Positions 26,199 through 53,636 of a stretch of 64,000 nucleotides of DNA are shown piece after piece. The stretch lies in the NCBI RefSeq assembly GCF_002113885.1, contig NW_018408154.1, positions 906,929-970,928 on the forward strand, written 5' to 3'. Origin of the DNA: Mizuhopecten yessoensis (taxonomy: Eukaryota). A model generated the notes under the pieces. It was given only the letters and a program-made list of their open reading frames with translations, was not told where the DNA came from and did no database searches. Each line of letters begins with the position of its first letter. The first letter of the stretch is position 1. Made by a program: the position numbers and the translations under genes.

Positions 26199-27941
26199 GC
26201 ACCCCTTTCAAATTAAATTACTGAGAGAAAAGTATTTGGTTTTTGCAAACCGTTCACCCATTCTTGGTTTAACTTATATATATATATTGATGTATTGTCG
26301 CTTTTTAAATGTTTTGTGTAATAACTGTTGAGGAGAGGGCTTTGATAATGTTGTGAAAACTTGTGCCCGATCCTATTGCTGTAAAAATAAAAAGCAATAC
26401 AATATGTTTGAACGAAATATCTGACTGTCACTTAGTTTGGCTTCTCGGTAATATGGATTTTTTTTACAAAATACTCACACTTTCTTCATTATTGGATTCT
26501 GACAATATCATATTGGATACTAATGTTCTCACAAAGGGAGACATGGATTTACGTATTGTGTTCTCTCTTGTGTATCATTAATTTCCTGCAGTTCTAGTGT
26601 AACTGGTTAGTATGGCACTGTGTGTAGTGACAGTGACTTTGAAGTGCCCTAACCGAACTCTAGCTCTACCCTGGTAAAATCTCTGATATTCCAATTAGAC
26701 TGCTAATCTCTATGTATGTATATATATAACTGGCTTATTGGTTCGGCCTACCCTTAATTGTATCTACCTAAACCTAATATGTTACATCTTCTATTTATAT
26801 GTAGTATATGGTTGAAATGTATGTCTTTTCTATATGGAAAGGGCTTTTATAGACAATGACTGTGTCTAATCCTATTGTTAATTGCAACAATAGAATAATT
26901 TTCTTCATCATTGGATTCAAATAGAAACAATTTCAATACACTTTGACTTAAAATGAGTATGAAAATACTGATTGATTTGTAACTACTGACAGAACGAGTC
27001 TAACGTCATTCTCCTGATATGGCATAGGTGTCGACGTTATAACCGTACTTCACTAGCCATAGATAGAAGATTTTCTCAAGCGCTTGATTTCATATTAGTG
27101 TTTTAGGATTCCTGGTACTATCCATGGTGTGTGTAATAAAACGATGTAAGGATTTTGTAAATCGATGCAATATTCCCTTTATATTTGTTTTTCAAAAATG
27201 CTGAAATCCAATTAAGCGTTATACTGTATGTTTGTTGGCGGAAGGTTATTTGGTAATCCGGAGCATATTGTGACCTCATGGTTTGGTGAGCTCAGTGCAA
27301 ATTATTCTCATTGCATAAAACTGAAACAGGAAAGTTTTAAAATATATTTTGAGATTTCTTGGAAATTTTCTTTAACTCTTTATGACTCATGTAGATGTAT
27401 AATTTCCTTAAGCATACTTTACCAGCCAAAGTAAGATTACGTACCCTGATAAAGAATACAGAAGGGCACACAAGACAATAGACTCGCTTATTGCACGACC
27501 AAGGAAGAATTTCAGCGTATTGTTCAGCTATATTATACATAAGGAAATACATATCAGTTAGTGATCGTTTATGTGCGGGTGTCTATTTCATCTACGTGCC
27601 TATTGTTGTTACGAGAACTGGGCGTGAACACCACAACAGACTAGGTATGTCACAATTTAGTTTGCTTAACTTGCAAGTCATTGGTTGATCTCAATGAACG
27701 AACTTGTGCAGACAGATCGCTACATGTAACGTACGAAAGATATAATTTGATGTTGTGCAAATGTTTGCTTTGTTCGGTTAACGCCTTATTAACAGCTAAG
27801 TTCATTAAGAACATGTATCCATATGTGTAATGTATGCATTGGTGAAGGAGGCGATATGTTGGTGTCATCCCCCCTCGATCTGATGGCGAATTAAGAGTGC
27901 TAATTCACTGATACACCGCATACATTATAGTAATTCACCAG

Positions 27942-28100
27942 GGCCCGTATACCTGAAACAGCTATCATGCTCAAGCATGGATCCTATGCTCAAACCAGCT
28001 TCCTCGTAACTCACTTAAATCATGTGACACAGTAACAATGTCAAGTGCAAACATTTTTAAATCAGAGTTTGAGCATGTGAAAGCTTCATGAATACGGGCC
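27942..28100. mobile_element. MITE, same family as 12639-12903 (shorter copy)
   Basis: cag|ggcccgtatacctgaa...catgctcaagcatggat...ttcatgaatacgggcc|cag. Confidence 0.8.
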
Positions 28101-29223
28101 CAGGTCACACTTTACTGAAAACGGTTAAACCAATTCTCACCGCTACCTATTAAAGCTGCACGTGAAGCAGAGAGTAGCAATTAAGTACAATTCTGAGGAC
28201 TTTAGTTTGTCTCAGTGGTGATACAGAACCTATAACCTTCCTTGGGCGAACACTTAACACCAAGGTCATTAAAAAACAAAGGAGAGAAGACGTAAAGATC
28301 CGAAATGTTGCAATAAGTGCAGCACATTTAGTTTTGGCACTTTTGTGTCCCCAAGTACAGGGAACATATATAAATTTCAAATTTTGCAGGAGTTCCCATA
28401 TAACTATTACGATGCAGTGAGTAACAGCAGCAGGTATACTTTATATTTTAATCCCCAATTGCAGGGCTGTTAAAATATATGAGCTGATGTATTTTCTACC
28501 CAAGTTACAAAACAAAAGCACTTCATTTAAACAGAAATTCAACTGCAAACAGGAAGTCTTAACACAAAGTCTATGATAAAAAAGGCAAATAATGAAGGGC
28601 TAAAATGTGAAAACGAAAGTCTATTTTGGACAAATCCCAATCGTAGCGTTAAATAGATAGAGATGTTATCAGCCGTATACGGCGGTACTAGATAGAACAA
28701 GCTAGTGCTAGAATATTGGAAAAATGTACCCTAAGAATAAAGATAGTGAGTGTTCTCTTCTTCTGTCCATTTCCCGACTTCAAAAGACTATGATTCGTAT
28801 AGGCAAGGGCGCTTATATGTAGGTATTTTTAACATTGATCAATATGCACACAAGCAACGAAAACAATAGAAGTAGCACCATGATGATGGGATTTAGAATT
28901 TAAAGAATGAGATGGGAAAAGTGTGATTATCACAATATTCGCAACTCCCCCCCCNACATGAACTCATCACAAATGAGTAATAACTTACTAAAGGCTCGCT
29001 ACAAAGGGAGAAATCTTCATAAATGAGATGTTGAATGAAAATTCATGTAAGATCATTAATGCAAATTCGTATTGATTATACGCAGTTGCTAGCCAGTTCT
29101 TAACATATATGTGTTTTGCTATTTTTCAAATAACAATTGAGTTCAAATAAGATTAATTAATTGATATTCAGTAGTTTGATTTATAAATAAATACGTTTCA
29201 GATTCTAATACAACACATATACC

Positions 29224-30816
29224 ATGGCGTGGTCAGATGTACTGCAGGCTGTACTCGTGCTTCCGTTCACAGCGGGGAATTCGAGGACAGTTCGGAACCG
29301 ACCTGTTCATTTAGACGGAACGACATCCACCGTTGTCATCAGTATTTTCTTTTTCTCCTTTATATTACTGCTAGTGAATGGTATTATAGACAAAGAAGAC
29401 ACTCGCATAAGCTTCGTCGGGATCAAAGTTATTCTATCCATTGTTGTCTCCCTTGGCTTGCTGTCCTGTGTGGCTGTTATCATTGTCATCAAGGTCAAAG
29501 GCTTCAACTCAATAATGGAGCGTCGACGGGAGGTGACGAGTTCTCGTCTCCAGAAGGTTGTTTTGTGGATTTTTGGGATCCTGTCTGTTGTATATTGCTT
29601 CCTGAAAAGTGCCCACATAATAGAGTGTATCCACACTCTCGATTCCAATTACAAGTACCACGCCCCAATCATGGACTGTGTATACTACGCTATAATACTT
29701 GGATTCCTGCCCGTACAAATGTTATCACTAACCTATCTCACGCCTTACCGATTCAAAAGATGTTGGCAGATTCATTATGTGATACTGGTAGTACTAGCCT
29801 CTAATCTCACGATGTGGGTTTACGGTTTGAAGACACATAGCCATTCTCATGTAAACCTCAAAAACGTCACGTGGAATACCAACTGTACAAATCAAACATT
29901 TACACATATGCTTCATGTCTCCGAAAACATTCTGCCTCCAATATTTTTGGAATATTCTATGTTAGCAATTACGATGACACACAATTTATCTGTTAAATGG
30001 GAAACTTACAATGACAGAAGCGAAAATACAATCCTAGAGACCCATAGTCTGACAGAAACAAGTGAAAGCACTTTCGAAGAAGGCGACAGTACTGTTCCAA
30101 TCAATGCTGAAACTCCATTATTGTCTGAATTATCAAGATCTTCCCTAGGTCAGAGGAGAGACAAGAATATGTTCCTGTTCTACGTCGTTTTGATGTTATG
30201 GGGATTGCTTTCTGTTGGTATTTTCATCGGATACATTGTTCAAGTCACTATCTACAATGAAATTCAACAGAAATGGACCGCTAGTTTAGAACTGGTCATT
30301 GCTGTCATGATGGCGATTTGTACATATTATGGATATCATTTTGTGGCACGAGACACCAATCCTCCTTTCAAGTCCGATCCAATTTCCGGAGGCGAATACG
30401 TGTTTATTCTTTCTTCAATTGGTTCACTGTTAGGAAGTACATTTCGCGTGATGACATCCCTAAAATTGAAAACTCCCAATTATGTGATTGCAGTTTCTCG
30501 GGGGATCTTTGGTACTCTTTCCTACTTACAGACTGTCCTTATCCTTCACGCTAGCCGCTGCAGCCCGAAGCACCAGTGTCGAAATAAAGCATCACTGAAG
30601 CGCACTTTGCTGATACTGTCATTGTACAATTTAGGGGCTTGGACCATCGAGAGCTTTATATTGGGTAGCTTTCCTAGTTTAAGGAGCGCAGAGAAACAAT
30701 ATCTTGACCAGGCCCTGTGGGAAATAAGTTACCAGGTTTGCCATCCTATGAATGTCTTCTTCAGATTCGCCTCAGCTCTGGAATTATATGAGTTGTATAA
30801 GAAATATGGAGGCTAA
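29224..30816 (+). CDS. Otop: Otopetrin-like 12-TM protein, paralog A (530 aa, single coding exon)
   Basis: 12 hydrophobic segments in a 6+6 arrangement around an acidic/Ser loop. TM4 PVQM, TM5 SNLTMW, TM6 PIFLEYS, TM10 YLQT, TM11 YNLGAW and TM12 CHPMNVFFRFAS match the otopetrin P-x-x-x-E-Y and P-x-x-x-F-Y-R-x-H-S signatures. Confidence 0.82.
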   Translation: MAWSDVLQAVLVLPFTAGNSRTVRNRPVHLDGTTSTVVISIFFFSFILLLVNGIIDKEDTRISFVGIKVILSIVVSLGLLSCVAVIIVIKVKGFNSIMERRREVTSSRLQKVVLWIFGILSVVYCFLKSAHIIECIHTLDSNYKYHAPIMDCVYYAIILGFLPVQMLSLTYLTPYRFKRCWQIHYVILVVLASNLTMWVYGLKTHSHSHVNLKNVTWNTNCTNQTFTHMLHVSENILPPIFLEYSMLAITMTHNLSVKWETYNDRSENTILETHSLTETSESTFEEGDSTVPINAETPLLSELSRSSLGQRRDKNMFLFYVVLMLWGLLSVGIFIGYIVQVTIYNEIQQKWTASLELVIAVMMAICTYYGYHFVARDTNPPFKSDPISGGEYVFILSSIGSLLGSTFRVMTSLKLKTPNYVIAVSRGIFGTLSYLQTVLILHASRCSPKHQCRNKASLKRTLLILSLYNLGAWTIESFILGSFPSLRSAEKQYLDQALWEISYQVCHPMNVFFRFASALELYELYKKYGG

Positions 30817-31639
30817 ACACGTAGAGTGCCTTTTGTCCGCCAACTTCTGTGAATGAGTGTATCAGACTTTGTATTTGTTCTAAAGGTTAGGAGAAACTTA
30901 TACACCATCGCTTTTCTAAAGTCGATAAACATCGCTGATACGAGGTCTCTATATTTTTAAAATTGTGTGGACTGGTTTCAATAACATAAGATCTGTGACG
31001 AAAAGTATTGCCTACCTTCCAGAGCAAATGATTGTGTCTCCATGTTTTGCTTTTTTATCCCCCCCCCCCCCCCCCCCATCGAATTGATTTATTCATTTTG
31101 TTTTCGTATGGTTACAATATATTGTACTTTTCTTAATGCTTAGTGAAGAAGTTAGAGATGAAGAATTTTACTCTTTGTTTTAAAGGAAATTGCTGTTAAA
31201 TATACATATTATAGTAATTTTACTTACCAATAAACTAAGTGATGAACGTTGATTCTGGTAACAGGAAGAGTTCGCCTACTGTAAAGTATAAAACAAATGG
31301 TTTGAGATGAAAAAGTTACATAATTGTATATATAAAAATATTTTATTAAAAGATAAATGAATATCATTTTTCAAAGTCTTATGGATTTCTTCCTTTCTTT
31401 TCTTTCTTGTTTTTAGATTCTACTGATCAATGAAATTTGTACCTTCCTTTTTAATAAGAGAAAACATGTGTCTTTGCCTACAAGTACAAGTTAGAGGATG
31501 GAAAGGAATTTAAGCCTACGGAACACCAGCAATTTAGCAGTTTTGTTACCATTGTCAGTAACCTTTCATGGGATGCTCAATTATCTGGAAGAAAAAAAAG
31601 AGAAAACCCCCGCTCATTAAAGTTTGAATGCAATTAAGG

Positions 31640-31870
31640 AAACAATCAAATAAATGCACCGTTATCTATTTAAATATCTATGAAAAGATTTGTAAAACTT
31701 CATCTAGAATATGCCAACCAAGTTTGGAGCCGGCATCTGATAAAATATACATAGCGGCGGCCATAGCCATAGATTATTATCAAAAGAAGAGCACGAAAAC
31801 TTATTGGGTATGGCAGACCTATCTGCTCCCAACGTTACACCTTAACACGATAATATTAAACTGTTGATGC
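31640..31870 (+). mobile_element. Decayed CR1-type LINE ORF2 fragment
   Basis: FVKLHLEYANQVWSRHLIK resembles the CR1 motif LVRPHLEYANQVWSPHL, followed by a frameshifted Q.R.TK...DLS. Confidence 0.65.
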
Positions 31871-33267
31871 ATAAGGCTGAACTAATCTTATGAGAAGGGA
31901 AAACGCGGGATGCCAATCAGCGGTGAATGAATACATAAATAATCTATTTTTTTCAGTACATGTACAGGAGTATTAGTCTGAACGGCATGAAACTTTGTGA
32001 GATAAGGACAGGTCGCAGTCCACATGTGACACCACTGAGGATCCTGATGGGGATAATCCTTTAGCTAAATCAGGCTTTAATCCTCAATCAATTAAGTTTA
32101 GGATATGTTACGATTCCTTCTCCTTCTATTTCATAAATCTGCTGGCCAGATATTTAGGAAAATCCACATGAGCATTGGTAGGTAGATGTGCGTAACACTT
32201 TTATTTTCCGATCGGTCGTCAAACATGGTTGCGGTGGCTTCTGATTGGCTGACCCGTAATGGATTTAATTTAATTTTAATTTTGAGGATTGAAATGAAAA
32301 TTGGCGAAAAAGATATTTATGAGACACTTGAAACAATTGAAACTTACAACCGATCACAGGGTTGATAGGTCATATTTCATGGGTTAATACGCAATAAAAT
32401 TTAACATGGGTATATTCACTGGATAACACAGTACATTATGTAATAAACATGTATGTTTCCTAGTGAATTACTTCAACGACCAAAGTTAGATACACTACAC
32501 ATACAGGGTACACATCACAATAGGCTCATTTTTTGCCCCGGAAGAATTTAAGCGTACTGTGCTATTAATTACAATCATTAAGGAAACATCCGAAGTTTTG
32601 TTGGTGTCTGTAACGTTGTCTTCGTAAATTAATTTCTACACGGCTGAGCTGTTACGAGGAATTACCACGGCAGATAAGGTATGTAACAAATAATACACTT
32701 TAGTTGCTGACACTGACTGGATCTCCATTAAGGAGCTTATGTGTAAACAAACGCGTGAAACTCTTGTACACTTACAGTATGAACAATTCTCATGTTAGGA
32801 TTTTAAATCATTAACTCGAATAGAGTACATATAATGAGATGTATAAATATCATCTGTAGACAGACGAAGTAATTTCGAATTGTAAAGCTGTATGAGCTGT
32901 ACGCTCGTACAAACAATAATATATCAATTATATATATATACTTATACTTATTATAAAAGCAGAAAAATCATCCTTACGGATGAAGAAATATTATAAAAAG
33001 AAAAATTCGCAACAACGAGTCTTTAGTACTTTCATCTCTTCTACGGGATTCTTCAGATTTATACTTATACATATGTTCTCACCTTTTTATTTATTACACT
33101 AATGTATGAGTTATTGCAGTGCTTAAATGAAAAAGAAAGACTACTTTGGCAAGCCAAATAATATTTTTCTTGATTAGGAATTTAATTGATCAATTTATTA
33201 TGGTGATACAATACAGAAAAAGCTATTGATACAATGCAATCTATTGTCTTTTTTCAGAAATCTTAAC

Positions 33268-34869
33268 ATGGCATGGTCAGATGCACTGGTGAATGTACTG
33301 CTGCTTCCGTTCACAGCGGGGAATTCGAGGACAGTACGGAACCGACCTGTTCATTTGGACGGAACAACATCCACCGTTGTCATCAGTATTGTCTTTACCT
33401 CTTTACTTTTACTGCTCGTAAAAGCAATGATAGACCAGGAGAACACTTTATTAAGCTTTGCTGGGACCATAGGTTTCCTATCCGTTGTCGTCTCCTTTGG
33501 CTTGCTGTCCTGTGTTGCTGTCATCATTGTCATCAAGGTCAAAGGCTTCCACTCAATATTAGACCCACGACAGGATGTGGCTAGTTCTCGTCTGCAAAAG
33601 ATTGTTTTATGGGGTTTCGGGATGGTGTCTGTAACATTTTGTTTTCTGAAGAGCGGTCATCTAGTAGAATGTATCGACATTCTAGACAACGCCCCAATCA
33701 TGGAGTGTGTATTCTATGTTATAATACTTGTGTTTTTGCCCGTACAGATTTTATTACTGACCTATCTCACGCCTTACCGATTCAAACGATCCGTACGTAT
33801 TCAGTATACGATCCTGTTAATGCTAGCCTCTAATATCACAATGTGGGTGTACAGTTTAATGACACATGATCAAGAACATTCACATGCTAACCCGAGAAAC
33901 GTCACGTGGAATACCAACTGTACAAATAAAACATTTACACATATGCTTTATGTTTCCGAAAAAATTCTCTCTCCAATATTTTTGGAATATTCTATGTTAG
34001 CAATTACGATGACACACAATTTATCTGTTAAATGGGAAACTTACAATGAAAGAAGCGAAAATACAATCCTAGAGACCCATAGTCTGACAGAAACAAGTAA
34101 AAGCACTGTCGATGAAGGCGAGTCAGACGACCGTTCTGTTCCCATAAATGCTGAAACTCCATTATTGTCTGGATTGTCAAAAGTTTCTCCAGGTCCAGTT
34201 CAGAGGACAGACAGGAAAACGTTCCTGTTCTACGTCGTTTTGATGTTGTATGGATTGCTTTCTGTCAGTATTTTCATCGGATACATTGTTCGAGTCACTG
34301 TCCCCAGTGAAATGCAGCAGAAATGGATCGCTAGTTTGGAACTGGTTATTTCTATCATGATGGCGATTTGTACATTTTATGGATATCATCTTGTGGCACG
34401 AGACACCAATCCTCCTTTCAAGTCCGATCCTATATCCGGAGGCGAATACGTGTTTATTATCTCCGCAGTTGGAACCATGATAAGTTGCACATTTAGCGTG
34501 ATGACATCCCTAAAATCCCTGAAAACTCCCAATTATGTGTTTGCAGTTTCTCGGGGGATCTTTGGTACACTTTCCTACTTACAGACTGTCCTTATCCTTC
34601 ACGCTAGCCGCTGCAGCCCGAAGCATCACTGCCGAAATAAAGCATCACTGAAGCGCACTTTGCTGTTGCTGTCATTGTACAATTTAGGGGCTTGGATCAT
34701 CGAGAGCTTTATATTGGGTAGTTTTCCTAGTTTAAGGAGCGCAGAGAAGCAACTCCTCGGCCAGGCTCTGTTGGAAATAAATTACAAAGTTTGCCATCCT
34801 ATGAATGTCTTCTTCAGATTTGCCTCAGCTCTAGAATTATATGAGTTATATAAGAAATATGGAGGCTAA
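33268..34869 (+). CDS. Otop: Otopetrin-like protein, paralog B (533 aa from ATG 33268)
   Basis: Close paralog of A (MAWSD...YKKYGG). The ORF-track start at 33226 runs through an intron acceptor (ttttttcag, 33257). Confidence 0.82.
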   Translation: MAWSDALVNVLLLPFTAGNSRTVRNRPVHLDGTTSTVVISIVFTSLLLLLVKAMIDQENTLLSFAGTIGFLSVVVSFGLLSCVAVIIVIKVKGFHSILDPRQDVASSRLQKIVLWGFGMVSVTFCFLKSGHLVECIDILDNAPIMECVFYVIILVFLPVQILLLTYLTPYRFKRSVRIQYTILLMLASNITMWVYSLMTHDQEHSHANPRNVTWNTNCTNKTFTHMLYVSEKILSPIFLEYSMLAITMTHNLSVKWETYNERSENTILETHSLTETSKSTVDEGESDDRSVPINAETPLLSGLSKVSPGPVQRTDRKTFLFYVVLMLYGLLSVSIFIGYIVRVTVPSEMQQKWIASLELVISIMMAICTFYGYHLVARDTNPPFKSDPISGGEYVFIISAVGTMISCTFSVMTSLKSLKTPNYVFAVSRGIFGTLSYLQTVLILHASRCSPKHHCRNKASLKRTLLLLSLYNLGAWIIESFILGSFPSLRSAEKQLLGQALLEINYKVCHPMNVFFRFASALELYELYKKYGG

Positions 34870-35970
34870 ACATGTCCAGTGTCATTTGTCTGTAATCTGT
34901 TACTTTTTAAATATGACTGGAAATTAGCACAATAGCCGTTAGTTGTAATATTGTTTTGGGATTTTGTTTAACACAAGTTTGACTCTGCTTTGTTTCCAAG
35001 TGTTTGATCAGTTTTTTGTCATCCTCATTAATGATTGCTAGCATGTTGCTTATATTCAATTTGATAACTTAATGTATATTTCGATAAAATCGTCTCGCCG
35101 AAAAGGAAATAGAATAAAATTATAAATAAATAAAATCAGTAATGCACTCTCTAATGCATATCGACTTCTGTGTTTGCCATTAGGTTTTGTACAAATAGAT
35201 AACACGTTTCCGCTTAGACGTCACGGGAAAAAACCCTTAGCTGATCTGCTGCAATAGGAACCCTAGAGATCACCATTTTATATTCTATTTTCTCTTTCTT
35301 TTCGCCGGTGTATCCCTAGCTACATGTACTTTAGCTAAGCTCATTGTCACAATAATGTGAGGGAATGGAGTGTCATACTTCCGCATTCAAATTACGGTAT
35401 TCCAGTGATATAACAAGGAAATGGCCCATTACTTATTACTTCACACGAACATACAAGACGTAAATCCAAAGCAAGCAAATAATCAAAGTCCCTAGTGTGT
35501 ACAAAAAAAGTACACAATTAAACAGAATTATGAAATGGATTGCATGAATTACATGACAGGTTGAATGGTGAAAGATGATTGACTGGAGAGAAGTTCAGAA
35601 CTCCTCTGATTCTTACAAACCAGCCTTACTGCTCTCTCTATCAACCAGGCAACGGGTTCTTTTACCGACAATCAGCAAAATCCTATCTTTAAAGCTTATA
35701 TTATCTTAATATTATATGCTCAGCACAATGAAAGGAATGTCTAGTACCACACGTGACGGATCCATGATAAGGAAAGACATTATTGAATTAGCGATAATGT
35801 AACGTCTGTGTGAACAAAGCATAAATCTTATTGTTGCTACCACTGGCGTCATAACTAGCAGGAAATACCAAAATGAATTATTAATATGTAATTCAGAAAA
35901 ATTCATATAAGGAAGTACATAAATATCCAAATCTTTGTTACTGTTAATTTGTTTTGGTCAGCTTCAAACA

Positions 35971-37114
35971 AACAAGAGGCTCATGGGCCTTAACGGTCAC
36001 CTGATTTATGTTAAAACTGATTTTATCGATGTTGCAAAATTAAAAAGAAATAATTTTGTAACAAAGGTAACTTGAACTACATGTAATATACTATGTACAA
36101 GTAGTGGTTCTGTCAGTCAGCTGAATTTAGGTAAAGCACCTTGAGATCCTTCCATCTATGAAGAGTATTTGATTCTACCAAATCTGGATCTTGAGAAGAA
36201 GGTTTTTAAAATTTTAGTCAATTTGACCTTTTTTGGCCCCGCCCCTAAGGCCCCTTGGGTCTGGGGACCATATTACTCACAATTAAACTATAGTAAAGTT
36301 TACCACCTCCCAAGGGGAAAAACGTGAGACCCCAGGGTCATGAAATTTACAATTTTGGTAAAGCACCTTGAGACCATTCCATCTATGAAGAGTATTTGAT
36401 TCTACCATTTCTGGGTATTGAGATTAAGATTTTTGAACTTTCAGTCAATTCAACCCTTTTTGGCCCCACCCATCAGCCCCTGGGGGTCAGTCAGGGCTGA
36501 TTTGTGCATATCAAAATGCTATCCAATATTGATAATGCTAACCAAGTTTGAATTAGTTCCAATGGAAATAAAACAAATTCTGGTCCAAAATGTGATTTCC
36601 CTATATAAACTATAGTAAAGTTTACCTCCTTTCCAGGGGGAAACGTGAGACACCATGGTAATGAAATTCACAACTCTGGTAAAGCACCTTAAGACCCTTC
36701 CATCTATAAAGAGTATTTGATTATACTATATCTGGATCTTGAGAAGAATTTTGATATTTTAGTCAATTTGACCCTTTTTGGGGACCATATGATTCACAAT
36801 TTTGGTTAAACTTTGGCCATGGAAGATTTTTGCAAAATTTCATTGAAATTGGTTCATTTTTTTGTTGAGAAGAAGTCAATTTTGGTAAAGCACCTGCTTA
36901 AGACCCTTCCATCTATGAAGAGTATTTGATTCTACCATATCTGGGTCTTGAGAAGAAGATTTTTGAAATTTTAGTCAATTCATATCATTAAAATTGGTTC
37001 AGGGGTTTTGGAGAAGAAGTCGAAAATGTAAATTGTTTACGGACGCCGTACGACGCCGGACAAAAGGCGATCGCAATAGGTCACTTGAGACTTTGTCTCA
37101 GGTGACCTAAAAAA
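35971..37114. mobile_element. Non-autonomous Helentron/HINE-like element with internal tandem repeats
   Basis: Starts aacaagaggctcatgggcc with subterminal ggtcacctga. Four or more internal copies of ggtaaagcacct...ccatctatgaagagtatttgattctacca. Short gacg tract, then terminal hairpin aggtcacttgag/ctcaggtgacct and an A tract. Confidence 0.8.
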
Positions 37115-37852
37115 GCAGAAAAATGTATGACGAAATATTTATAAAAACAAGATAAAAATATACGATAAAAGGGTGATGGCATCATGTTTTAGTGATGTAC
37201 TCAAAACAGATAAAAAGAATCAACCGTTTCACAATTAAGGACATGAACATATCCTTAAGCGATATAGAGAAATTATATATATATACAAACGAATATTTTC
37301 AATGTGATGGTTATCGATCCATGCCTTACATGTACATCGAATGACTTGTACTTTGTCCAAACACAAACGACGAAGTTCTTTTTTTAGTTTCAGTATATAT
37401 TACGATTCTATGAACAAATGGAACTAAAGCTATCACCGAGGAGTTGACAACGTAAAATCAATAATACAAATGTCATTCTCTGCAGAGAAGGGTTGGGCTA
37501 TCTCAATTTTCAATTTAGCGCTCTCGTTAGAGCACATTTCCCACCATTTTCTTGCTGAAGAAAGAGGATGTGTGATCAGTCACAAACATGTTTTTTTGTT
37601 TTTTGTTTTTTAATAATGATTTTATTTTCAAAAGAGGTTTTTCAATACAGTGACAATAATAATGGATCAGTAATTCATTCAGATCATATAATAATCTATT
37701 TGTCACCATTCATCTTTCCTATCGCCAATCATACCATACAAATTATGCAAAAAGAAATTTGTATCACTATAGACTGCATATGGATAGGTATTATTTCACA
37801 ATCTTCCTTATTTATAAACTCAATTATATATTCTTTCTTGTCATACAGTATA

Positions 37853-38393
37853 ATATTGCATGCAAAGACATACATTATCACAAATGTTGCAACCATATTA
37901 TTTTACCCCCCGCAACGAAGTGGTTTTTTTGAGAGGGGGTCGATATTATACATCCTTTAGTTCATAGGCTTATTCAAAACACCGAGAATAATGTGATCAG
38001 GATATTTTAATAAAACGATGCGGAACGGGCAGAAATTTCCGGAATCGGCAGAAATGAGACACATAACAAATTGTAATGCATATATAATCGTAAAGATTGG
38101 GCCAAAAGAGAAAAGTTGGCACCTCTGCATGGTACTGCCACTACACAAATTTTTTTTCTAAGAAATCTATTGAAGAAAAAGCAAATGCATAGCCGGACAA
38201 ATTTATACGTAAAGGGACGTTTTTCTCTTAAAAAGGTCAGAAACGACGAATAATTTCAGGGGGCATAATTACATATGGTACTGCCATTACACTTAAAGAT
38301 TCAAAGACAGGGGGGGGGGGGGGGGGGGGGGGAAGGGATGATTAATAATATGGTTGCAACATTTTGGATAATGTATGTCTATGCATGCAATAT
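37853..38393. mobile_element. Element bounded by inverted repeats of about 50 bp
   Basis: atattgcatgcaaagacatacattatcacaaatgttgcaaccatattatt (37853-37902) is the near reverse complement of 38344-38393. Confidence 0.75.
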
Positions 38394-38819
38394 CAAGTTC
38401 ATACAGAAAGTAGTGGAAGGCCTTACGCTTATTTTTCTTAAATCAGAAATAATTTCCCCCAACAAAGGTAGATTTTTTTGTTTTCTTTTGTTAAGAATTG
38501 CCGCTGTATGACAAGGAAGAATATATAATTGAGTTTATAAATAAGGAAGATCTTCTGTCACTATCTTATTGTTAGATATGCCGTAAACGTTAAGAGAACT
38601 CTTGACAGTGGACATTGTAAGTATACATTTTACTGCACAGAACATTATGATTATTATGATTAAGAACCAAGTTATGTCATAAATATGAAATGAATGCATA
38701 CTTTTTATTTGTCTTGTGCAACTTAATAACAATAATAATAAATCCTGTGTTGACTTTCACAACTGATTTAACATATAAAAATCCATTTTTTCTGTGTTTT
38801 AGAAAAGTCTGATAAGAAC

Positions 38820-40544
38820 ATGGCGTGGTTAAACGTTTTGCAGTCTGTATTCATGCTTCCGTTCATGGCGGGTTACGCGAAGGCAGGACGGAATCGACCT
38901 ACCCATCTTGATGGGACAACCTCTGTTATTGTCTTCAGCACATTCCTCTTCTCCTTCATTCTTCTGATTGCGAAAACAATGACAGGTACTAACGAAACTG
39001 TATTTCATTGTCGCGGATTCCATGTAATTTTGTCCAGTATTGCCTTTATTGGCGTGCTTTCCTATATTATACTGATCATTACTCTCAGACTCAAGGGCTT
39101 CAGCAGCTTATTGGAACAACGAACCGCACGTAGCACTTCTGGTGTCCATATCATCTTCCTCTGGATGTTTGGGGTTGCATCCGTCGTCTTTTGTATACTG
39201 AATACAGGCCGGCTGATAGAATGTGAACTTTCGCTGGAGTCCAATGTCGTTTCAGATGTTAATCTGATGGAATGTGCTTATTATGTAGCCATGGCGCTGT
39301 TCCTCTTAATACAGATGATGGTACTGACCTATCTGATGCCTTTTAAGTTTAGAAGCTCTTTGCGACTTCAATACTTGATTCTGATAATCATATCCACAAA
39401 TTTATCGATGTGTGCTTACAGTTTTAGAGATCGTTACCTCGGAGATATGTATGTAGGTAATGGCACATGGATTGTTCTCAATTGCACAAATCAAACATTT
39501 TCACAAATGCTTGATGTTTCTAACAAAGTCCTCACTCCAACGTTTTTGGAATGTTCCTTCCTATCGATAACAATTATTATGAACATGTCATCTAAATGGA
39601 ACACAGACAACACCATAAATGACAACAACGAACTAACCGTCGTTATTGCATCTAGTGACAGTGTATCAGATACTAATGTCGACAACCCCGTTTCTTTTGA
39701 ACGCAGGAGATCACAATTATCAGGCGAACATAACAACGACACTGAATACGATGACAACTCATCCGAATCTAATCCAAGGACACCCTTGTTGTCTAATTCC
39801 CAAGTATCCAGACGTGGATCAAACTCGGCTCCTGGTTGTCACACTGGCGTCAAACCTAACAAAGAACGTTTAAAGCCGCTGTTGTGGTACTACGCTAGCG
39901 TGTTGTTCTCCTGGATACTCGGCATCGCTGTTTTGATAGTTTACATAGTACAAATTACCAGTGAAAGCACCGACAGAGGTATGTTGAACGCTCGGGATGT
40001 GTGCGAGACACTTGCTTCATGTATGATGGCCGTATATGTACATGCAGGATTTTATCTCCTGTCAAAACACACTCGGCCAAAAGCTGACGTTGGCCCTGTT
40101 TCCGGAAGTGAATATATCTTCATTATATCATCGATCGGGGCACTATTTTCATGCGTTTTTAGCGTATTGAGTTTTATACACTTTGCTCCTACCTTCTATA
40201 AGGTGCATGTAGCGTCTCGTGTAATCATAGGAGTCATATCATACACACAGACCGTGTTTATTCTACATGCAAAACGCTGCAGAAGGAAACGCACGAATGA
40301 GAACATTTCGTCCCTTCGTTCAGTGATGTTGCTGCTCGTTATGTTCAATTTTGTTTTCTGGATTGTCGAAAGTTTTATTTATGGCGGATATTACAATGTG
40401 AAATATATGGAAAGAAAATACCTCGGTCCTGATTTGTGGAACATCCGAGTCGGCATATGTCATCCCCTCTATATGTACTTTAGTTTTACTTCAGCATTGG
40501 AAATGTACAACCTATTCCAACAATTCTCAGCTAAACAATTATAG
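38820..40544 (+). CDS. Otop: Otopetrin-like protein, paralog C (574 aa, more divergent)
   Basis: Same N-terminal RNRPxHLDGTTS motif and 12-TM layout; PTFLECS, YTQT, FNFVFW, CHPLYMYFSFTS; longer central loop. Confidence 0.78.
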   Translation: MAWLNVLQSVFMLPFMAGYAKAGRNRPTHLDGTTSVIVFSTFLFSFILLIAKTMTGTNETVFHCRGFHVILSSIAFIGVLSYIILIITLRLKGFSSLLEQRTARSTSGVHIIFLWMFGVASVVFCILNTGRLIECELSLESNVVSDVNLMECAYYVAMALFLLIQMMVLTYLMPFKFRSSLRLQYLILIIISTNLSMCAYSFRDRYLGDMYVGNGTWIVLNCTNQTFSQMLDVSNKVLTPTFLECSFLSITIIMNMSSKWNTDNTINDNNELTVVIASSDSVSDTNVDNPVSFERRRSQLSGEHNNDTEYDDNSSESNPRTPLLSNSQVSRRGSNSAPGCHTGVKPNKERLKPLLWYYASVLFSWILGIAVLIVYIVQITSESTDRGMLNARDVCETLASCMMAVYVHAGFYLLSKHTRPKADVGPVSGSEYIFIISSIGALFSCVFSVLSFIHFAPTFYKVHVASRVIIGVISYTQTVFILHAKRCRRKRTNENISSLRSVMLLLVMFNFVFWIVESFIYGGYYNVKYMERKYLGPDLWNIRVGICHPLYMYFSFTSALEMYNLFQQFSAKQL

Positions 40545-44550: not shown

Positions 44551-44758
44551 TTACCAACAGTCTATTTGTTCCTGTAAACTTTGGGGGAGTCTGACATTAC
44601 AAAAGTCGTCATTCCAGAAGTTTTCAGGAAGATCTGAAGATGGCACGATTTCTTCGTCGGAGATTAATCTCACTGTACAGTTTCTAAGAAGGGTTTCCAA
44701 ATCAAACGGTGCCTGCTTTTTTGAAACAGCGTCGTTACTCATTACCCCGTCATATGCT
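44551..44758 (-). CDS. Terminal coding exon of the ANKRD31-like gene
   Basis: tttctag|A acceptor; ends ...VRLISDEEIVPSSDLPENFW...IDCW*. Confidence 0.82.
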
Positions 44759-47700
44759 CTAGAAATAGAAGAAAGATAATTGTAAACATTTTTAATTTTA
44801 AATTTATATATATATTAATGCAAAAGTTATTACAAAATATTTTATCCTCTTGTTTTTTCCCTTTTTTCTACAATTTAGAATAAAAAAAGATTTCTGTTAG
44901 CTGTAAGAGAAAACAAAGTGCTGACAGAATTCAAAAATACTTCAAGGAATAAGTTTTTGAATCCTGCGTTTGTAACTATATTGTTTCCTCCAAATGTCCT
45001 CACCTTCATGATAAACTTCACCAGAATACTCAAAACAGTCAATTATTTATCACCTAACAAAATCCCTGAAGCTATTCAGTAGATGCAAATTCTGATATAA
45101 TCTGTTTTCTTGCTTTGTTTTTGTTTGTTTCTGTGATAGTAAAAGAGATACATTAATATGAATAGAGAAACCCAGCTGAACCGATTGGTGCCTAATTGAA
45201 TTGTAACTTTGTTATAGCAATAACCAGACGAGATAGAACTGCGCACTTCTTCGTGTTAGGAGCTCACCTGTTACTCTCTGGTTCCTCGTTAGCCTTGGTC
45301 AAATCTGCGATATATAATCAAAGCAGGATTCTTGATACGTGAAGCAATCAACCATGAATAGTTGTACAAATTTGCTTAAATACTTCCGTTATATATCAGA
45401 TCAGTATGTATTATTCATCAAAACACTATCACTGATAAAACGAAGAAAGCAAATAAAGTTTCATTGTAGTTCTGAAATGTTCGAAAGTAAAACCAAATCC
45501 AGTCGGTTGTCTATTTCTTTTTTCGTATCGGGATTTTTTTTTTAAATATTTATTTTGAATTGTCGCATCAACGTTTGATATCTACTTCTTCATAGAAAGT
45601 AACAACATTTGGAATACTTAAGTAATGTAACATACATAACGCTTGACATAGATTAAATATGACTTAATTAGAACAAGATTACATACCTATTACAGACGTA
45701 GGACCTGGATTGACAAAGGTCAGCAGTGGTTGACCATGATAGAAAACCTAGCAAACAACAATTTATAGCACTATATCAACAAACTCCAAATAATATAACA
45801 AAGTATTACATTTTTCTTGGCACTTCCAAAACACAAACATATTAATAAGTCAGACCTAAAAAAACTTAATTTCTAAGAAATTTACGCTCATCCATTATTA
45901 CATGTTTCAGCCCATAGAGTTCTGTTTTATGTTAGGATTGCATATGGGTTTATCTTAGATCATTATTGACTGACATGCTCTCTCGGATTTGTCAGGAAAC
46001 ACTTCGTAACACATCAACATCATGTATCACAAAGTGCGTGAACCGCTCACCCTAACACATGTATCACATAGTGCGTGAACCGCTCACCCTAACACATGTA
46101 TCACAAAGGGCGTGAACCGCTCACCCTAACACATGTATCACATAGTGCGTGAACCGCTCACCCTCACTCATGTAACACATAGTGCGTGAACCGCTCACCC
46201 TAACACATGTATCACAAAGTGCGTGAACCGCTCCCCCTCACTCATGTAACACATGTATCACAAAGGGCGTGACCCGCTCACCCTAACACATGTATCACAT
46301 AGTGCGTGAACCGCTCACCTTAACACATGTAACACATAGTCCGTGAACCGCTCACCCTAACACATGTATCACATAGTGCGTGAACCGCTAACCCTAACAC
46401 ATGTATCATATAGTGCGTGAACCGCTCACCCTAACACATGAATCACATAGTGCGTGAACCGCTCACCATAACATGTATCACATAGTGCGTTAACGGCTCA
46501 CCCTAACACATGTATCACATAGTGCGTGACCGCTCACCCTAACACATGTAACACATAGTGCGTGAACCTCTCACCCTAACACATGTAACACATAGTGCGT
46601 GAACCGCTCCCCCTAACACATGTATCACATAGTGCGTGAACCGCTCACCCTAACACATGTATCATATAATGCGTGAACCGCTAACCCTAACACATGTATC
46701 ACATAGTGCGTGAACGCTCACCCTAACACATGTAACACATAGTGCGTGAACCGCTAACCCTATCAGAGCATCTGGATATGAATTTAAATATTTAAATTAT
46801 CGCAGAATGACGTAAACCGCAAACAGGCCTTAGATCCCAGTAGGGGGTCGACAATGACGAGTACTATCCGTATTTTCTCATCTCCTGCATGGGAAAATTT
46901 TCGGAGCAAAAGTACAGAAAATGCGTTAGAAGTGTTTGGTATATTGATGCTTACCTTCCCCCTAGTCTTTAAAACTCTGGAGGAACGGAATGTAAACTGT
47001 ACGAGGAAAGATAGTCAAGAGGATTCACCACAGATGATATGTTTATAAAATGAAAATACCCCGTACCTCTCTGTAAGCTCGACTCTTTTTCACCAGTACG
47101 CCATCATTGACAGCGGAGACCCACTGGACAGGGGTTTTAAACACTTCACCTCCATGTCCTCTTATCAACCCAGAGTGCAAAAGGCTCCCGATGTACCGAC
47201 CATTCTTCTAAAATGAATAAATAAATATTCAATAAATAAATAATCAACATACTTATCAATACGAGGAAACACAAAGTTAACAGACAGTGAACGTATTCTT
47301 TCCTATTGGTAACAGCCTAGTTAGTAACCACGCAAAATCACGACAACAAAAAAGATCATGAAATTAGAATTGTGTGACTCAGGAAAAGTTGAAACGTATA
47401 GAAATTCGAACATGTCTCCTAAGTTTTGAATTTTGTAGCATACAAATGACCATTTCACCCGAATTTTTAGCAATAAATTACACATGATATTTTACGAATA
47501 CACCCAGATCTCCATTATCTATAACAAATAGTTTACCAATATTTCCTTATCTTTAGCATGTGCTGCACATAATTGATTGATACACAATCGTCTGTAATTT
47601 ACAGATAAACTCTAGTCTGTAGTATTGTACCATACACGATTTAGACCTAATATTTACCATTTAATCACATAAACATACAGAAATGTACCAATACACTATT

Positions 47701-50700
47701 ATCTGTATTAATTAACAAATCACTATTTAACAAAATTCCGTATTTTTTTATCATTTTACAACACATTATTACCAACACTTACATGTTATTGCTTATGTCC
47801 AACACTGTTCTGTATGAGGTTAGTCCTTGTAAACAATAACAACACTGTTCTGTATTAGGTTAGTCCTTGTAAACAATAACAAGACACACACTGTACCTTA
47901 GATTCTGTGACAAGGCAATCATTTTCAGGCACGAGAGCACCGCGCTCTATCAGAGTTCTAAGAGGTGGATATTTTGTCTGTACCGGAATGCTGCCATTCT
48001 GATCAGACTGCTCCTGTGTAGTATCATAAACTGACTTTGATTTATTCAAAGTGTACAAAAAAGACGACACATACATAAATACATGCAGTTACAGTGAACA
48101 TTATTGTTGTTACTTTTTTAACGGCTCTTCAACACATAAGAGATCAGTAGGGCAAATAAATGGTCGATTAAATTAGTTACAGTAAATGGCATCAGACAAA
48201 CGATCAAGTATATCAAGAGTGGCTATGATTAGTTGCATCTTTTGATTAGACCAACAGTTTTCAGGTAATCTAGGATTATAGAGATATTTGCTTTTGTTAA
48301 AAAAGAGATTTGATAGATTATAAGAAAGGTTTTTCGTGCTGGCTGAAGGTCGATGCAATCTAATAATGATAAGTGTTTTGCTTTAAATGGTTCGTGACAA
48401 GCTATGCATTGATGCTGGTCATCGGGTTTCAATAAATAAGAATGGGTCATGTATAAATGTCCCTTCCCAATACGGGCAGGGCCAACCTCGTCAGGGCGGC
48501 CTTTTCTATAGCTAATAACCATTCTCCAACTACAGGTTTTATAAAGGAGGTTACCTTTCCGAACAGTCCAAGACACAACAAAAAGTCACAAGGCAAATTT
48601 ACCTCACTTACCCGGAACTCCTCCGCTGTTGTCCTTTGATCCTCTTCGATATGTTTGGTGTAAGGACCAATATGAGGCTTTAACACCGGAACAGGAACTT
48701 CGCATTCAATCTCCATCTTCTGACTTTCAGCTAAAAGTCGTCTTTGTTGTATTCTTCTATTGATTTCCGATGATTTGACTGGAAACACGTCGCTACACGA
48801 TGCAGTACTTGGTGATATGTTATCAACATCAGTGGTGTTCGGCAGAGGTGGAGATTTGAACATAGGACCGTGTGACATAATTTGATGCTGAGATGGAGGT
48901 GGGGAACTGGAATTTATAACAGAAGTGTTTGATTGTGGTTTTCTTAATGGCGGAGGAACTAAAATGACCTTGAGCTTTCCAGAGGTTTGCTTGATACCTT
49001 GATCTGGAGCGTTGGTCTTTGTATACAAGGTACGAATGTTTGGATAATTAACAGTCCGTGAAAATGTTTCTTTTGACGTCATATTCGGCAGTACATTTTT
49101 TGGCGTTCCATTGCAATCGAAGTGCTGAAATTAAAGATCAGATAATTAAAATATTGAATTATGTGTTGTCCATTACCAAACGCCAGCACTTCGCAAAAGG
49201 AAAAGTAAAAACAATAATTTATACATTATTTTATTATGTGTGATGCAAAATTTGTTGGAAAGAATGAGGAAAGATGGGTATTTTGAAACATACAGGCCAT
49301 TACACTCCAATACCTCCTACCTTTCAATGAGTTGTCTCCCGTTTTCTCTGTTCAAGATTCAAGATTTCTCTGTCATACCTAGGTTATGATTAAAAATAAT
49401 CTTCCCCTACCTTGAGCGTTTTATCTTACTCGAGGGTTGGAGATTTTTCTGTTATACCCTCAAGGTAGGGGATGACTATTTTTCTGCCGACCTATTATTT
49501 TAGCCACAACTCCAACGACAGTAACCTGCTTGTAAACAAAAACACATGTGGGGTATGAATATTGTCATTCGTTTTCGATGACGTCACAATTACCAGTGAC
49601 ACATATTAATGACGTCACAATTGAACACGTACTAATCGGCACGAGGCTATCCCCCCCCCCCCCCCCCCCCCTCCCTAAGGGGGTGACAAGCTGATCTTTC
49701 CAGGCTGAAACGGGAGACACAACTGTGAACGGTGAACTTTGTCACCCCCGTATAGTATGACAGATGACAGGCGTAAACAAACAATACTATTACGTCACGG
49801 AAACAATCAGACTTAACATCATAATCAGCTCTAGACGGGAGAAATCATGTTTAAATCAAGACAACAAAACAGATTACAGTTGCGTGTTGAAAAGTATTGC
49901 TTTTAAACTTTGTATTGAGAGGACGAAAGGAAAAATAATCATCCTCTACCTTAAGGGTGTAACAGAGATATCTCCTACCCTCGGGGTGATTATTTGGTTG
50001 TCTTACCCGAGACTCTGTCCTCGATGCCTCCTCCTCTACAGAACCCTACTGCTGTTGATAGCCCCTTGGGTTGGAGATGTCTCTTTCACATCCCCATGGT
50101 AGGGGGAGATTATAAAGTCCTGCACTACTGTTAATATAAACACAACTTTGTCACACTGATTGAAACATCCTTTTCACTAACCTGTCTATTCAATCCAGCC
50201 TTACTCATAGCAGTTAGCTTATGAGCTCGTGGAGAGGTCCCACCACGGTTAGAAACAGGAATAGGTCGGTTGTTCTGTGCTGGAGCAGGCCATTCCTCTA
50301 CATTGGCACTTGACTGTATTGTAAAACATTTCCCAACAAGATCACCTGGCTGTGCTGGAGTCTTAGACCTGGTCTCAACATGTGTACAGGACCCTAACGA
50401 AGATCTTTCTTCAATACAGGTACTTGGCTGTTCCGGGTCAAACGAATTAATCATTGAGGTCGTAATCGTTTTCTGACGAGGATGGGTTTGAATTACACTT
50501 GTTTTTTGTTGAAAAAAGGAGGATTCGACAAACGGGTTTGCCGAGACTGTACCAGTGCCGCCCTGTCTCGGCACCGGTCTTTCTACACTGCCATTTTCTA
50601 TCAAGGAACTATTGGCGAAGCTCTTTGTCGGCAGCGACATCTTTTCCGTGTTTTGGTTCACAGGAATGTTACTGGTATAACTAAGTAGCAAACTTTGTGA

Positions 50701-53636
50701 GCATGATTCTGAGGTCAGACGAGACGATCTAGATGACTGTGTGTCCTGCACGCGCTTTTCCTTAGAGTTCGGTGGAGTAACTGTCATCTGGCTTGACCCA
50801 GTTTTTTGGCTCGCTTGATGATTAAGGTTCTGTGACAAACTCGTGGTTGTAGTCTGATATCCTGAACCATCATTTCTTTGTTCGATATCTTTTATTCTGG
50901 AACTCAGCGTCTTTTGCCTTTGGACCAGTTGGATCAGCTGTTTTTGTCGTTTTCCGAGTTGTTCGATCTCGCGCTTGTGTCGGAACCTATCCTGTTTTGT
51001 TTTGGAAGTGGACCGTACGTCGGCGGTCAAGCGGTGTCTGTAACACTTGTGCTGGTTGCTAAGCTGTCGCAACAGTGATTGAAGTGTGTCCATGTGTTGC
51101 TTTATTTTTTCAACGTCTGAAAATGAAAAGACAAATAATAGCGTTGAAGCTTTGGTAAATAAACGTTTTTATTTACTTTAACTTATAAGCTTGATTTAAT
51201 GAGAGGTTAACATGAAATAAACGTTCTAATAAAATCATTTATGCTATCAAAGTAAAATCACATCTCATAAATAATCATATTTTAAAATGCAGCTAATTGA
51301 TTATGAATATTTAATGACAACATAGATCTATTGTTTTCGATGTTCTTGCACAATGGACTAAAAGAAATACTAGTACCCGGATACTCGCGCTGTTATTGTT
51401 CAGTAAGTTAACTTAGGTAATAATGAGATACATTTCCTTATTTCTCCACGTCAATAGTTTCATAAAACACTTTGGTGAACGCCATGAAGCTTACCTCCTT
51501 GAAGACTCGATTTGCGCAGTTGTTTGTCAACATAGTCTTGCTGCTTGACGATCCTTTTGAATATCACTTCCTCTCGGTCATGCTTATCATTGAACAAACA
51601 GTCAAGAGGTTGAACATAATATTCGGGTTTTTCCAGGGGTATTTTTAGAATGTAATTACAAATTTTATTACTAGCATATATCTAGTCTAACCCAACCGCT
51701 TACTAACCACAGTTTAATGTAACATAGTCATCATCCAGGAACAAATTAACCCAAAACTTCAAAATACAGCGGTAATATATATCTGAATAAACATATTTGG
51801 GAACTATATACCCCAGTGTCAACACTAAGGGAACTATATACCCAGTGTCAACATACAAGGGAACTATAAACCCCAGTGTCAACATACAAGGGAACTATAT
51901 ACCCCAGTGTCAACATACAAGGAAACTATATACCCCAGTGTCAACATACAACGGAACAATAAACCCCAGTGTATTTGGTGTTTCCACTGTGATGTGCTAT
52001 TGTATTGGGTGTTTCCACTGTGATGAGTTGTTGTATTGGGTGTTTCCACTGTGATGTGTTATTGTATTGGGTGTTTCCACTGTGATGAGTTGTTTTATTG
52101 GGTGTTTCCACTGTGATGTGTTGTTGTATTGGGTGTTTCCACTGTGATGTGCTATTGTATTGGGTGTTTCCACTGTGATGAGTTGTTTTATTGGGTGTTT
52201 CCACTGTGATGNNNNNNNNNNNNNNNNNNNNNNNNNNNNNNNNNNNNNNNNNNNNNNNNNNNNNNNNNNNNNNNNNNNNNNNNNNNNNNNNNNNNNNNNN
52301 NNNNNNNNNNNNNNNNNNNNNNNNNNNNNNNNNNNNNNNNNNNNNNNNNNNNNNNNNNNNNNNNNNNNNNNNNNNNNNNNNNNNNNNNNNNNNNNNNNNN
52401 NNNNNNNNNNNNNNNNNNNNNNNNNNNNNNNNNNNNNNNNNNNNNNNNNNNNNNNNNNNNNNNNNNNNNNNNNNNNNNNNNNNGGTAAATGGGTAAGCAT
52501 TTTAAAATCTTGTGTAAATCCTCATATCTTGGCTAACTCAGGAAACGAGTACCTTAATAAAGTTCAAGGAAATTGCAAAAATGTGTTTTGGAAAGATGTG
52601 TTTAGGGCATGGTATAAATTAAGAGCAAAAGAGGAGCTGTTTAAAAATGAGAATTTTGCCCTACTTAAGACACCCTTATGGTATAACAAAAATATTTCTG
52701 TTGGTAATAAAGTTGTTTTTTATAGTAAGTGGTTTAAAAACGGGATTATGATAATTAATGATTTGTTGAAAAACAACACAGACTACTCTTTCTTGTCTTT
52801 TAAGGAATTTTGTGATCTACATGGTACAATAACTAATTATCTAGAATATCATGGCTTGATAACAAGCATAAAGAATTATCTGAAACAACTTAATTTGCCA
52901 AACAAAAATGTGATATACCCAATTATACCGTTACATCTTGTAATAATTTTAAAGAAGAAAAAAGGTTCTCAAGACTTCTATAATATACTTATCAGAAATA
53001 ATGCATCAATAACTGCTCAAACAAAATGGGGAACTATATTCGACTATAATCAGGAAACTTGGGGGAAAATATATGCTATTCCTTTCAGGGTTACAAAAAA
53101 TACAAAATTGCAATGGTTGCAATTTAGAATTAATCATTATATTTTAACAACCAATTCTTATTTATGCAAAATTGGACTTGTAAATAACCCACACTGTGTT
53201 TTTTGTATCATAGAAAGGGAGACAATTACCCACGTTTTATGGGAATGCAGGGAAGTACAAAAATTTCTGAGCAATTTTGAAAGTCTTTTAAGTGCTCTCA
53301 CTATTCCTTTCTCACTAAATAAAGAATCAATGATCTTTGGTTTTATCAACCAAACTGGAATTTATACCAGAATTGATAATGAAATTACTCTGTTCATTAA
53401 ACAATATATATACAAAACCAGATGTTTTCATAAGTCACTTAATGTGACGGCTTTAGTCAATTCGATTAAAGATTACTATAAGGTTCAGAAATATATTGCT
53501 CGTGGTAAAGGGGAACAAGGCCTTAGAAGATTTACTTCTGAATGGGAAAAATGGTTAAAATTAGTAGAGCTTGACCTCAACTAACCCTGAGTATTATGAC
53601 TATTTATATTAAGTTATTAGTTGTTATTCTACTTTA

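Follow-up and report, generated by a model that had tools for sequence, protein, structure and literature searches.

The stretch of DNA considered here, called the window below, is 64,000 nucleotides (nt) long, comes from contig NW_018408154.1 of the scallop Mizuhopecten yessoensis (positions 906,929 to 970,928, forward strand) and carries three otopetrin-like genes in tandem, which we call A, B and C. In the published model of otopetrin conduction the histidine of transmembrane helix (TM) 12 is the obligatory proton acceptor (H669 in XtOTOP3, H574 in zebrafish OTOP1, H567 in CeOTOP8); at this position A and B have alanine and C has threonine. An earlier note on this DNA, made from its letters, had described three intact open reading frames (ORFs) with an otopetrin scaffold, and the frames of 530, 533 and 574 amino acids (aa), together with a structural model of A that has 12 helices, bear this description out. 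The coding sequences (CDS), two key codons and the TM12 segments lie as follows.

29224-30816, + strand: CDS A, otopetrin-like, 530 aa, 12 TM helices; uninterrupted ORF, assigned by family profile and fold model
33268-34869, + strand: CDS B, otopetrin-like, 533 aa, recent duplicate of A; uninterrupted ORF
38820-40544, + strand: CDS C, otopetrin-like, 574 aa, older paralogue, without the Arg of the FYR box and without the TM6 Tyr
29950-29952, + strand: codon of Glu243 of A, equivalent of the buried TM6 Glu (XtOTOP3 E321, zebrafish OTOP1 E267)
30394-30396, + strand: codon of Glu391 of A, corresponding to the TM9 Asp, partner of the TM12 His in canonical OTOPs, by hidden Markov model (HMM) alignment to OTOP3 and OTOP1
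30736-30774, + strand: TM12 segment of A, VCHPMNVFFRFAS, with Cys-His ahead of the hinge Pro, FFR for FYR and Ala516 for His
34789-34827, + strand: TM12 segment of B, VCHPMNVFFRFAS
40455-40493, + strand: TM12 segment of C, ICHPLYMYFSFTS

The start of CDS B is placed at the ATG homologous to that of A, while the ORF list begins at an upstream TTG (33226). Judged from their sequences, A and B are a recent duplication: their proteins are 79% identical and their nucleotide identity of 84.7% is confined to the coding exon, with C sharing 39-40% protein identity with either of them. All three proteins indeed have the residues that the earlier note listed as retained, namely the TM6 Glu and, in each of the two constriction triads, Gln and Asn (in A numbering, Q165/N194 in the N barrel, Q436/N469 in the C barrel, and E243, which stands in IFLEYS in A). 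The TM12 readings given there, FFRFAS for A and B and YFSFTS for C, likewise agree with the translations; in A and B the FYR box is FFR, with Arg retained and Tyr replaced by Phe. A and B retain the Tyr of the N-barrel triad, which C has replaced by Cys. The residue four positions before the TM10 Gln, which aligns with zebrafish OTOP1 E429 (the position of the backstroke mutant), had been described correctly as hydrophobic (Leu, Leu and Ile in A, B and C). It is Gln in most paralogues and in chicken OTOP3 and Glu in zebrafish OTOP1, and among the paralogues only the trio has a hydrophobic residue there.

That A, B and C are true otopetrin relatives is established by homology and by predicted fold. 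The Pfam Otopetrin model (PF03189), with which the earlier note had proposed to check its assignment, recognises C at 45.7 bits (cut-off 27.8) over profile positions 240-434, thus the C-terminal half only, whereas A and B, searched singly, give no Pfam match, and A alone reaches OTOP2 with an E-value of only 0.03. A profile made from the 24 full-length paralogues of the scallop genome described below does match the OTOPs (E-values of 1.5e-29 with chicken OTOP3, 6.5e-23 with zebrafish OTOP1 and 3e-16 with mouse OTOP2), in two stretches that together span both barrels. The structural check proposed at the same time succeeded for A itself: an AlphaFold2 monomer model (predicted local distance difference test score 72.7, predicted template-modelling score 0.75) contains 12 long helices, and its best 12 matches in the PDB by Foldseek are all OTOP1, OTOP2, OTOP3 or CeOTOP8 (probability 1.00, template-modelling score 0.58-0.73 by target), the next fold reaching at most 0.22. 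It is the profile matches and this fold comparison, taken together, that establish the assignment for the family.

A bivalve expansion without the TM12 histidine

Genome searches were run over the 988-Mb assembly, in which the window corresponds to contig C4827. With the Pfam model, about four canonical otopetrins made of several exons are recovered (204-275 bits), along with many divergent copies that have open frames of 520-640 aa. A profile of the trio gives 44 matches, from which 28 ORFs were extracted, 24 of them full length; broken paralogues are also present elsewhere in the genome. All 24 full-length paralogues, without exception, have the Glu of TM6, the Gln of TM10, the Asn of TM11 and the Pro of TM12; at the position of Glu391 in TM9 they have Glu or Asp, and at the TM12 His site Ala, Ser, Thr, Phe or Glu and never His. 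The canonical otopetrins of the same genome, read as single C-terminal exons with no joined spliced model, have FFRFHS, FYRFHS and FFRFHS in TM12 (three exons). Since these His-bearing proteins read F[FY]RFHS, it is the loss of His and not the change from Tyr to Phe that is distinctive; of the rewired TM12 described in the earlier note, the Tyr to Phe part is rejected. Nor does the trio form a unit of its own, as had been supposed: from the tree and the alignments it is one small branch (support 1.0) in a His-less family of at least 24 intact single-coding-exon genes, and not special in itself. Note also a separate scallop subclade on contigs C76689 and C5302 (L007, L024 and L028) that reads FYR[LI]ES: Glu occupies the His site, and a His follows five residues downstream (SAFHFW in L024 and L028), a solution unlike that of the Ala/Ser/Thr clade.

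The closest proteins to A are uncharacterised ones from other scallops, Ylistrum balloti (61% identity) and Argopecten irradians (54-55%). A word-indexed protein search, queried first by A and afterwards by the family alignment, gave no matches beyond close scallop orthologues and a single fish fragment and could not settle the taxonomic breadth of the family; an exhaustive profile search was therefore used, which yielded 1514 cluster representatives at an E-value of at most 1e-3, 150 of them at 1e-30 or below. Those that carry names are all from pteriomorph bivalves (Pecten, Ylistrum, Argopecten, Crassostrea, Saccostrea, Pinctada, Mytilus), apart from one nemertean. Among 118 sufficiently complete representatives from outside the window, the TM12 His is present in 39 and absent in 79, a proportion that is not a family-wide estimate, as the query was itself His-less and its relatives are over-represented. 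The replacing residues are Asn (18), Lys (11), Gln (9), Glu (8), and Thr, Ser, Ala, Phe, Leu and others. The earlier note would have given up its reading if the altered motif had proved common in canonical invertebrate otopetrins; a His-less TM12 is common among bivalve otopetrin-like representatives (the 79 of 118), but not in the canonical ones.

A tree was built from 142 sequences and 480 columns (FastTree, LG+gamma), excluding rows with less than 75% coverage and the three duplicates of A, B and C. In it, A and B form a group with proteins of Ylistrum and Argopecten (support 0.996), C is sister to this group (support 1.0), and the resulting trio clade is nested in a clade of 37 tips (support 0.997) whose members have nothing but Ala, Ser, Thr, Leu or Phe at the His site. 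As vertebrate, nematode and canonical scallop otopetrins all have the His, the most parsimonious account is that the ancestor of this whole clade lost it once and acquired a small residue (Ala, Ser or Thr) in its place. The placement of A, B and C as a pectinid-specific branch of a large bivalve otopetrin-like (OtopL) expansion without the TM12 His is secure, and the earlier note's proposal of a lineage-specific otopetrin subfamily is upheld, as is the change that it saw in the conduction motif of TM12. All seven sequences of the trio clade share a signature that includes Cys506-His507 just before the TM12 hinge Pro (Leu-Leu in other paralogues), Glu476, Arg426 and Asn254. We also would like to point out a sister group of the scallop clade (P0027, P0040, P0043 and P0052), which has Gln in place of the TM6 Glu and Val or Ile in place of the TM11 Asn; its members look like otopetrin-like proteins in which even more of the conduction apparatus is gone. 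Our literature search found no paper on molluscan otopetrins as a family and none on natural His-less members.

Expression, synteny and selective constraint

The structure of gene A could be read from RNA contigs of one sequencing run (X2).

27477-27644, + strand: 5′ untranslated region (UTR) exon of gene A; 5′ limit approximate, at least 166 nt in RNA contigs
27645-29201, + strand: GT-AG intron of gene A within the 5′ UTR; donor gtatgt, acceptor tttcag, contains a run of N
29202-30989, + strand: the one coding exon of gene A, including about 170 nt of 3′ UTR; tiled by RNA contigs of run X2

Three overlapping X2 contigs tile 29200-30989. There is no coverage on either side (29000-29199 and 31000-32199), and these empty flanks are an internal control against carried-over DNA. 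The contig at the 29200 end extends for a further 166 nt without any match to the adjoining DNA, and the last 30 nt of this extension match 27613-27642 exactly, with 0 such matches expected by chance. An AG|gtatgt donor follows directly after the 5′ exon (27645) and a tttcag acceptor ends at 29201. The tiling contigs, the exon match and the two splice sites show that gene A gives rise to a spliced transcript, in which a GT-AG intron of 1.56 kb separates a 5′ UTR exon from the only coding exon. The same arrangement of polypyrimidine and AG stands 12-23 nt ahead of the ATG of B and of C. Each of the three genes has a single coding exon, joined by splicing to a 5′ UTR exon in A and probably also in B and C. 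Part of B is covered by X2 RNA contigs (33336-34509) and by a few reads in one raw-read run. The expressed A allele carries an in-frame insertion of 6 nt (TCCAGT) at 30149, at the edge of the disordered TM6-TM7 loop, and this frame-keeping change is the only indel seen in it. Separately, two segments between A and B (32200-32600 and 32990-33060) have very high depth in all four RNA runs, with word depth in the thousands in X2, and their reads fit partly and continue into unrelated sequence; these segments behave as an abundant transcribed interspersed repeat, outside the otopetrin genes.

The arrangement of the genes is conserved across scallop genera. Downstream of the trio lies a gene for a RAMA-domain (ANKRD31-like) protein (44551-48013); in Argopecten, two A-type genes adjoin a RAMA-domain gene, the counterpart standing next to the orthologous otopetrin-like pair (L061, 16820-21602), so that this gene is a conserved synteny anchor. 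Ylistrum has an A-type gene and, 4 kb downstream of it, an intact 566-aa C-type gene with the motif YFSFMS. Both the A-type/C-type pair and the loss of the FYR Arg in C thus predate the split of the genera. The C-type ORF of Ylistrum balloti (L062, 15510-17210) is absent from the called genes of its record and appears to be unannotated.

By the Nei-Gojobori method, the ratio of non-synonymous to synonymous divergence (dN/dS, or omega) is 0.15-0.22 between orthologues, where dS is 1.2-2.1 and hence saturated, 0.23 between A and C, and 0.41 between A and B (dS 0.28), the last being significantly below 1 (p 5e-9). The earlier note had named absent expression combined with a dN/dS near 1 as evidence that would speak against it; both the spliced transcript of A and the ratios just given point the other way. 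The data support the view that this subfamily is not decaying, as it shows expression, splicing, synteny between scallop genera and purifying selection. A retrogene or pseudogene reading is rejected by the splicing, the synteny and the constraint on the orthologues. Elsewhere in the window, a 474-aa ORF (52160-53581) has a sub-threshold zf-RVT match (25.4 bits, cut-off 27.5) and is probably a retroelement remnant, and seven other ORFs of 211-633 aa have no Pfam match.

Possible proton conduction and its alternatives

In the published structures the TM6 Glu is buried between the barrels, with the TM12 His beneath it, and changing Glu to Gln, or His to Ala or Gln, abolishes the current of XtOTOP3 (PMC6483595). 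A 2024 study of CeOTOP8 and mOTOP2 proposed a direct proton transfer from Glu to His, with the TM9 Asp stabilising the protonated His and shaping desensitisation, and termed the Glu/His pair absolutely conserved (PMC11343839). Every otopetrin member tested so far conducts protons (PMC12549899). Against this background, the residues that accompany the missing His are informative. The TM9 site is Glu or Asp in 39/39 proteins with Ala, Ser or Thr at the His site, compared with 30/49 His-bearing relatives (Fisher p 2e-6, with no correction for phylogeny). His occurs at the TM9 site in 16 cases, all with Glu, Lys, Asn, Gln or Arg at the TM12 site and none with a TM12 His. The appearance of a TM9 His only where TM12 has none suggests selection to keep a titratable group at the interface, and in the mussel clades this group looks as if it had been relocated to TM9.

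The reading that we favour, while stopping a little short of calling it probable, is that A, B and C retain proton-linked or pH-linked conduction through the TM6 Glu, with the proton handed off to water and the TM9 carboxylate and not to a His. A retained proton-linked function is preferred because a buried Glu, which is costly, and the TM9 carboxylate are strictly kept while the His has given way to small residues. The proton-linked function would be carried on through the interface between the barrels, where the TM6 Glu would pass its proton to water occupying the space vacated by the small residue, and this water would relay it onward to the TM9 Glu or Asp. Conduction may then have different kinetics, being for instance weak or non-desensitising. 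The His507 invariant in the trio, at the outer end of TM12, would be a candidate sensor of external pH or of metal; another idea is that H442 on TM10 and H507 on TM12 are candidate relocated acceptors.

Several observations weigh against this reading. Changing His to Ala alone kills the current in XtOTOP3 and zebrafish OTOP1 (PMC6483595, PMC11343839), so that, read straightforwardly, no conduction would be predicted. The Tyr of the C-barrel triad is Phe in all three proteins, and C lacks in addition the FYR Arg (YFS) and the TM6 Tyr. The TM9 comparison is not phylogenetically independent, its Ala/Ser/Thr set being largely one clade. Constraint specific to the TM segments was sought between A and B and not found (omega 0.40 in TM against 0.43 in non-TM parts), and their recent constraint is only moderate (omega 0.41). 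Three deep raw-read RNA runs have zero reads on A and only traces on B; expression must therefore be low or restricted. The expressed A allele differs from the reference by seven non-synonymous and two synonymous coding changes.

Some of these same facts would be expected if the proteins were non-conducting, keeping the otopetrin fold and a protonatable TM6 Glu as a sensor of pH or of a ligand, or acting as modulators of canonical otopetrins in heterodimers. We regard this as rather unlikely, and yet as the alternative that survives best: the His whose mutation to Ala or Gln abolishes current in the tested OTOPs is absent (PMC6483595, PMC11343839), the C-barrel Tyr is lost throughout the trio, the FYR Arg is lost both in C and in its Ylistrum orthologue, OTOPs are obligate dimers whose surface trafficking requires dimerisation (PMC12549899), and the genome offers some four canonical otopetrins as possible partners. 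However, at least 24 members make a large family for a purely regulatory role, and a strictly conserved buried TM6 carboxylate with its TM9 neighbour would be costly unless it served proton chemistry.

It is improbable, in our estimation, that the trio consists of channels or transporters shifted to another permeant species or stimulus (ammonium or another cation, for example), working through one barrel rather than through the interface. Such a shift would be in keeping with the conserved Gln and Asn of both constrictions beside a missing interface His, with the clade's own invariant residues that line TM10-12 (R426, E476 and C506-H507), and with a backstroke-equivalent position that is hydrophobic solely in the trio; but no otopetrin relative is known to conduct anything except protons (PMC12549899), every solved structure shows closed barrel constrictions (PMC6483595), and the sequence indicates no particular substrate. 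Finally, a drift of young duplicates towards pseudogenes whose frames are not yet broken is largely refuted and very improbable: the A/B omega of 0.41, equal in TM and non-TM parts, the seven non-synonymous changes among nine allelic coding differences, the low expression and the broken paralogues elsewhere would agree with it, but all three frames are intact, A-type and C-type orthologues are intact in other scallop genera with an omega of 0.15-0.22 despite dS above 1, the omega between A and B lies significantly below 1, A has a spliced transcript, and the sole indel of the expressed allele keeps the frame with its 6 nt. As for the roles suggested in the earlier note (altered selectivity, heterodimer regulation, chemosensing, ammonium sensing or biomineralisation), the sequence findings do not favour any single one.

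Returning to retained proton-linked conduction, we would extend it tentatively to the wider family. It is possible that natural otopetrins without the TM12 His still conduct protons and that the Glu-His relay is modular rather than obligatory, with a water-filled gap to the TM9 carboxylate in scallops, a His moved to TM9 in mussels, and His507 as an added outer sensor in the trio clade. If this were true, bivalves would possess a large set of proton channels, as yet unexplored and varied in their gating. The present model of conduction and desensitisation rests on the pair of TM6 Glu and TM12 His, called absolutely or highly conserved in all otopetrins (PMC11343839, PMC12549899), and here a whole, selectively maintained family keeps the Glu without the His, related bivalve clades having replaced or relocated the His in several ways. 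These natural His-less variants are a ready test of the relay model and, if they conduct, a source of new gating properties. For scallop biology, the trio would be candidates for pH handling or sensing.

Comparison with known otopetrins

With the vertebrate OTOP1, OTOP2 and OTOP3 and with CeOTOP8 (PDB 6nf4, 6nf6, 6o84 and 8ug4-8uga), the trio shares the 12-TM double barrel, the buried TM6 Glu, the Gln and Asn of both constriction triads, an acidic TM9 residue, the TM12 hinge Pro and the F-x-R-F-x-S frame. The trio differs in having Ala (A and B) or Thr (C) instead of the TM12 His, in the change of the C-barrel Tyr to Phe and of the TM9 Asp to Glu, and in the hydrophobic residue at the backstroke-equivalent position, C differing further by having neither the FYR Arg nor the TM6 Tyr. 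Sequence identity between the two groups is about 13-15%, and the coding region of the trio is a single exon.

The canonical scallop otopetrins (contigs C5592, C4526, C2776 and C1345) belong to the same superfamily, and in two of them the FYR box has the same Phe for Tyr (FFRFHS). Unlike the trio, they keep the TM12 His, consist of several exons and score 204-275 bits with the Pfam Otopetrin model, compared with 45.7 for C and no match for A or B. The other His-less scallop genes, found in arrays on C5164, C5554, C696, C5510 and other contigs, resemble the trio in the single coding exon, the fold, the invariant TM6 Glu, TM10 Gln and TM11 Asn, the small residue in place of the His and the acidic TM9 residue. 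They are, however, only 21-26% identical to A and lie on separate contigs, and they have Gln at the site four places ahead of the TM10 Gln (Leu or Ile in the trio), LLP where the trio clade has CHP, and Asp at the position of E476.

The OtopLc-like proteins of mussels and oysters (Crassostrea virginica XP_022337858, Mytilus XP_071130025) are of similar length and belong to the same bivalve expansion. Here the oyster representative retains FFRFHS, whereas the mussel clades have Lys or Glu at the His site, with the His often moved to the position of its TM9 partner.

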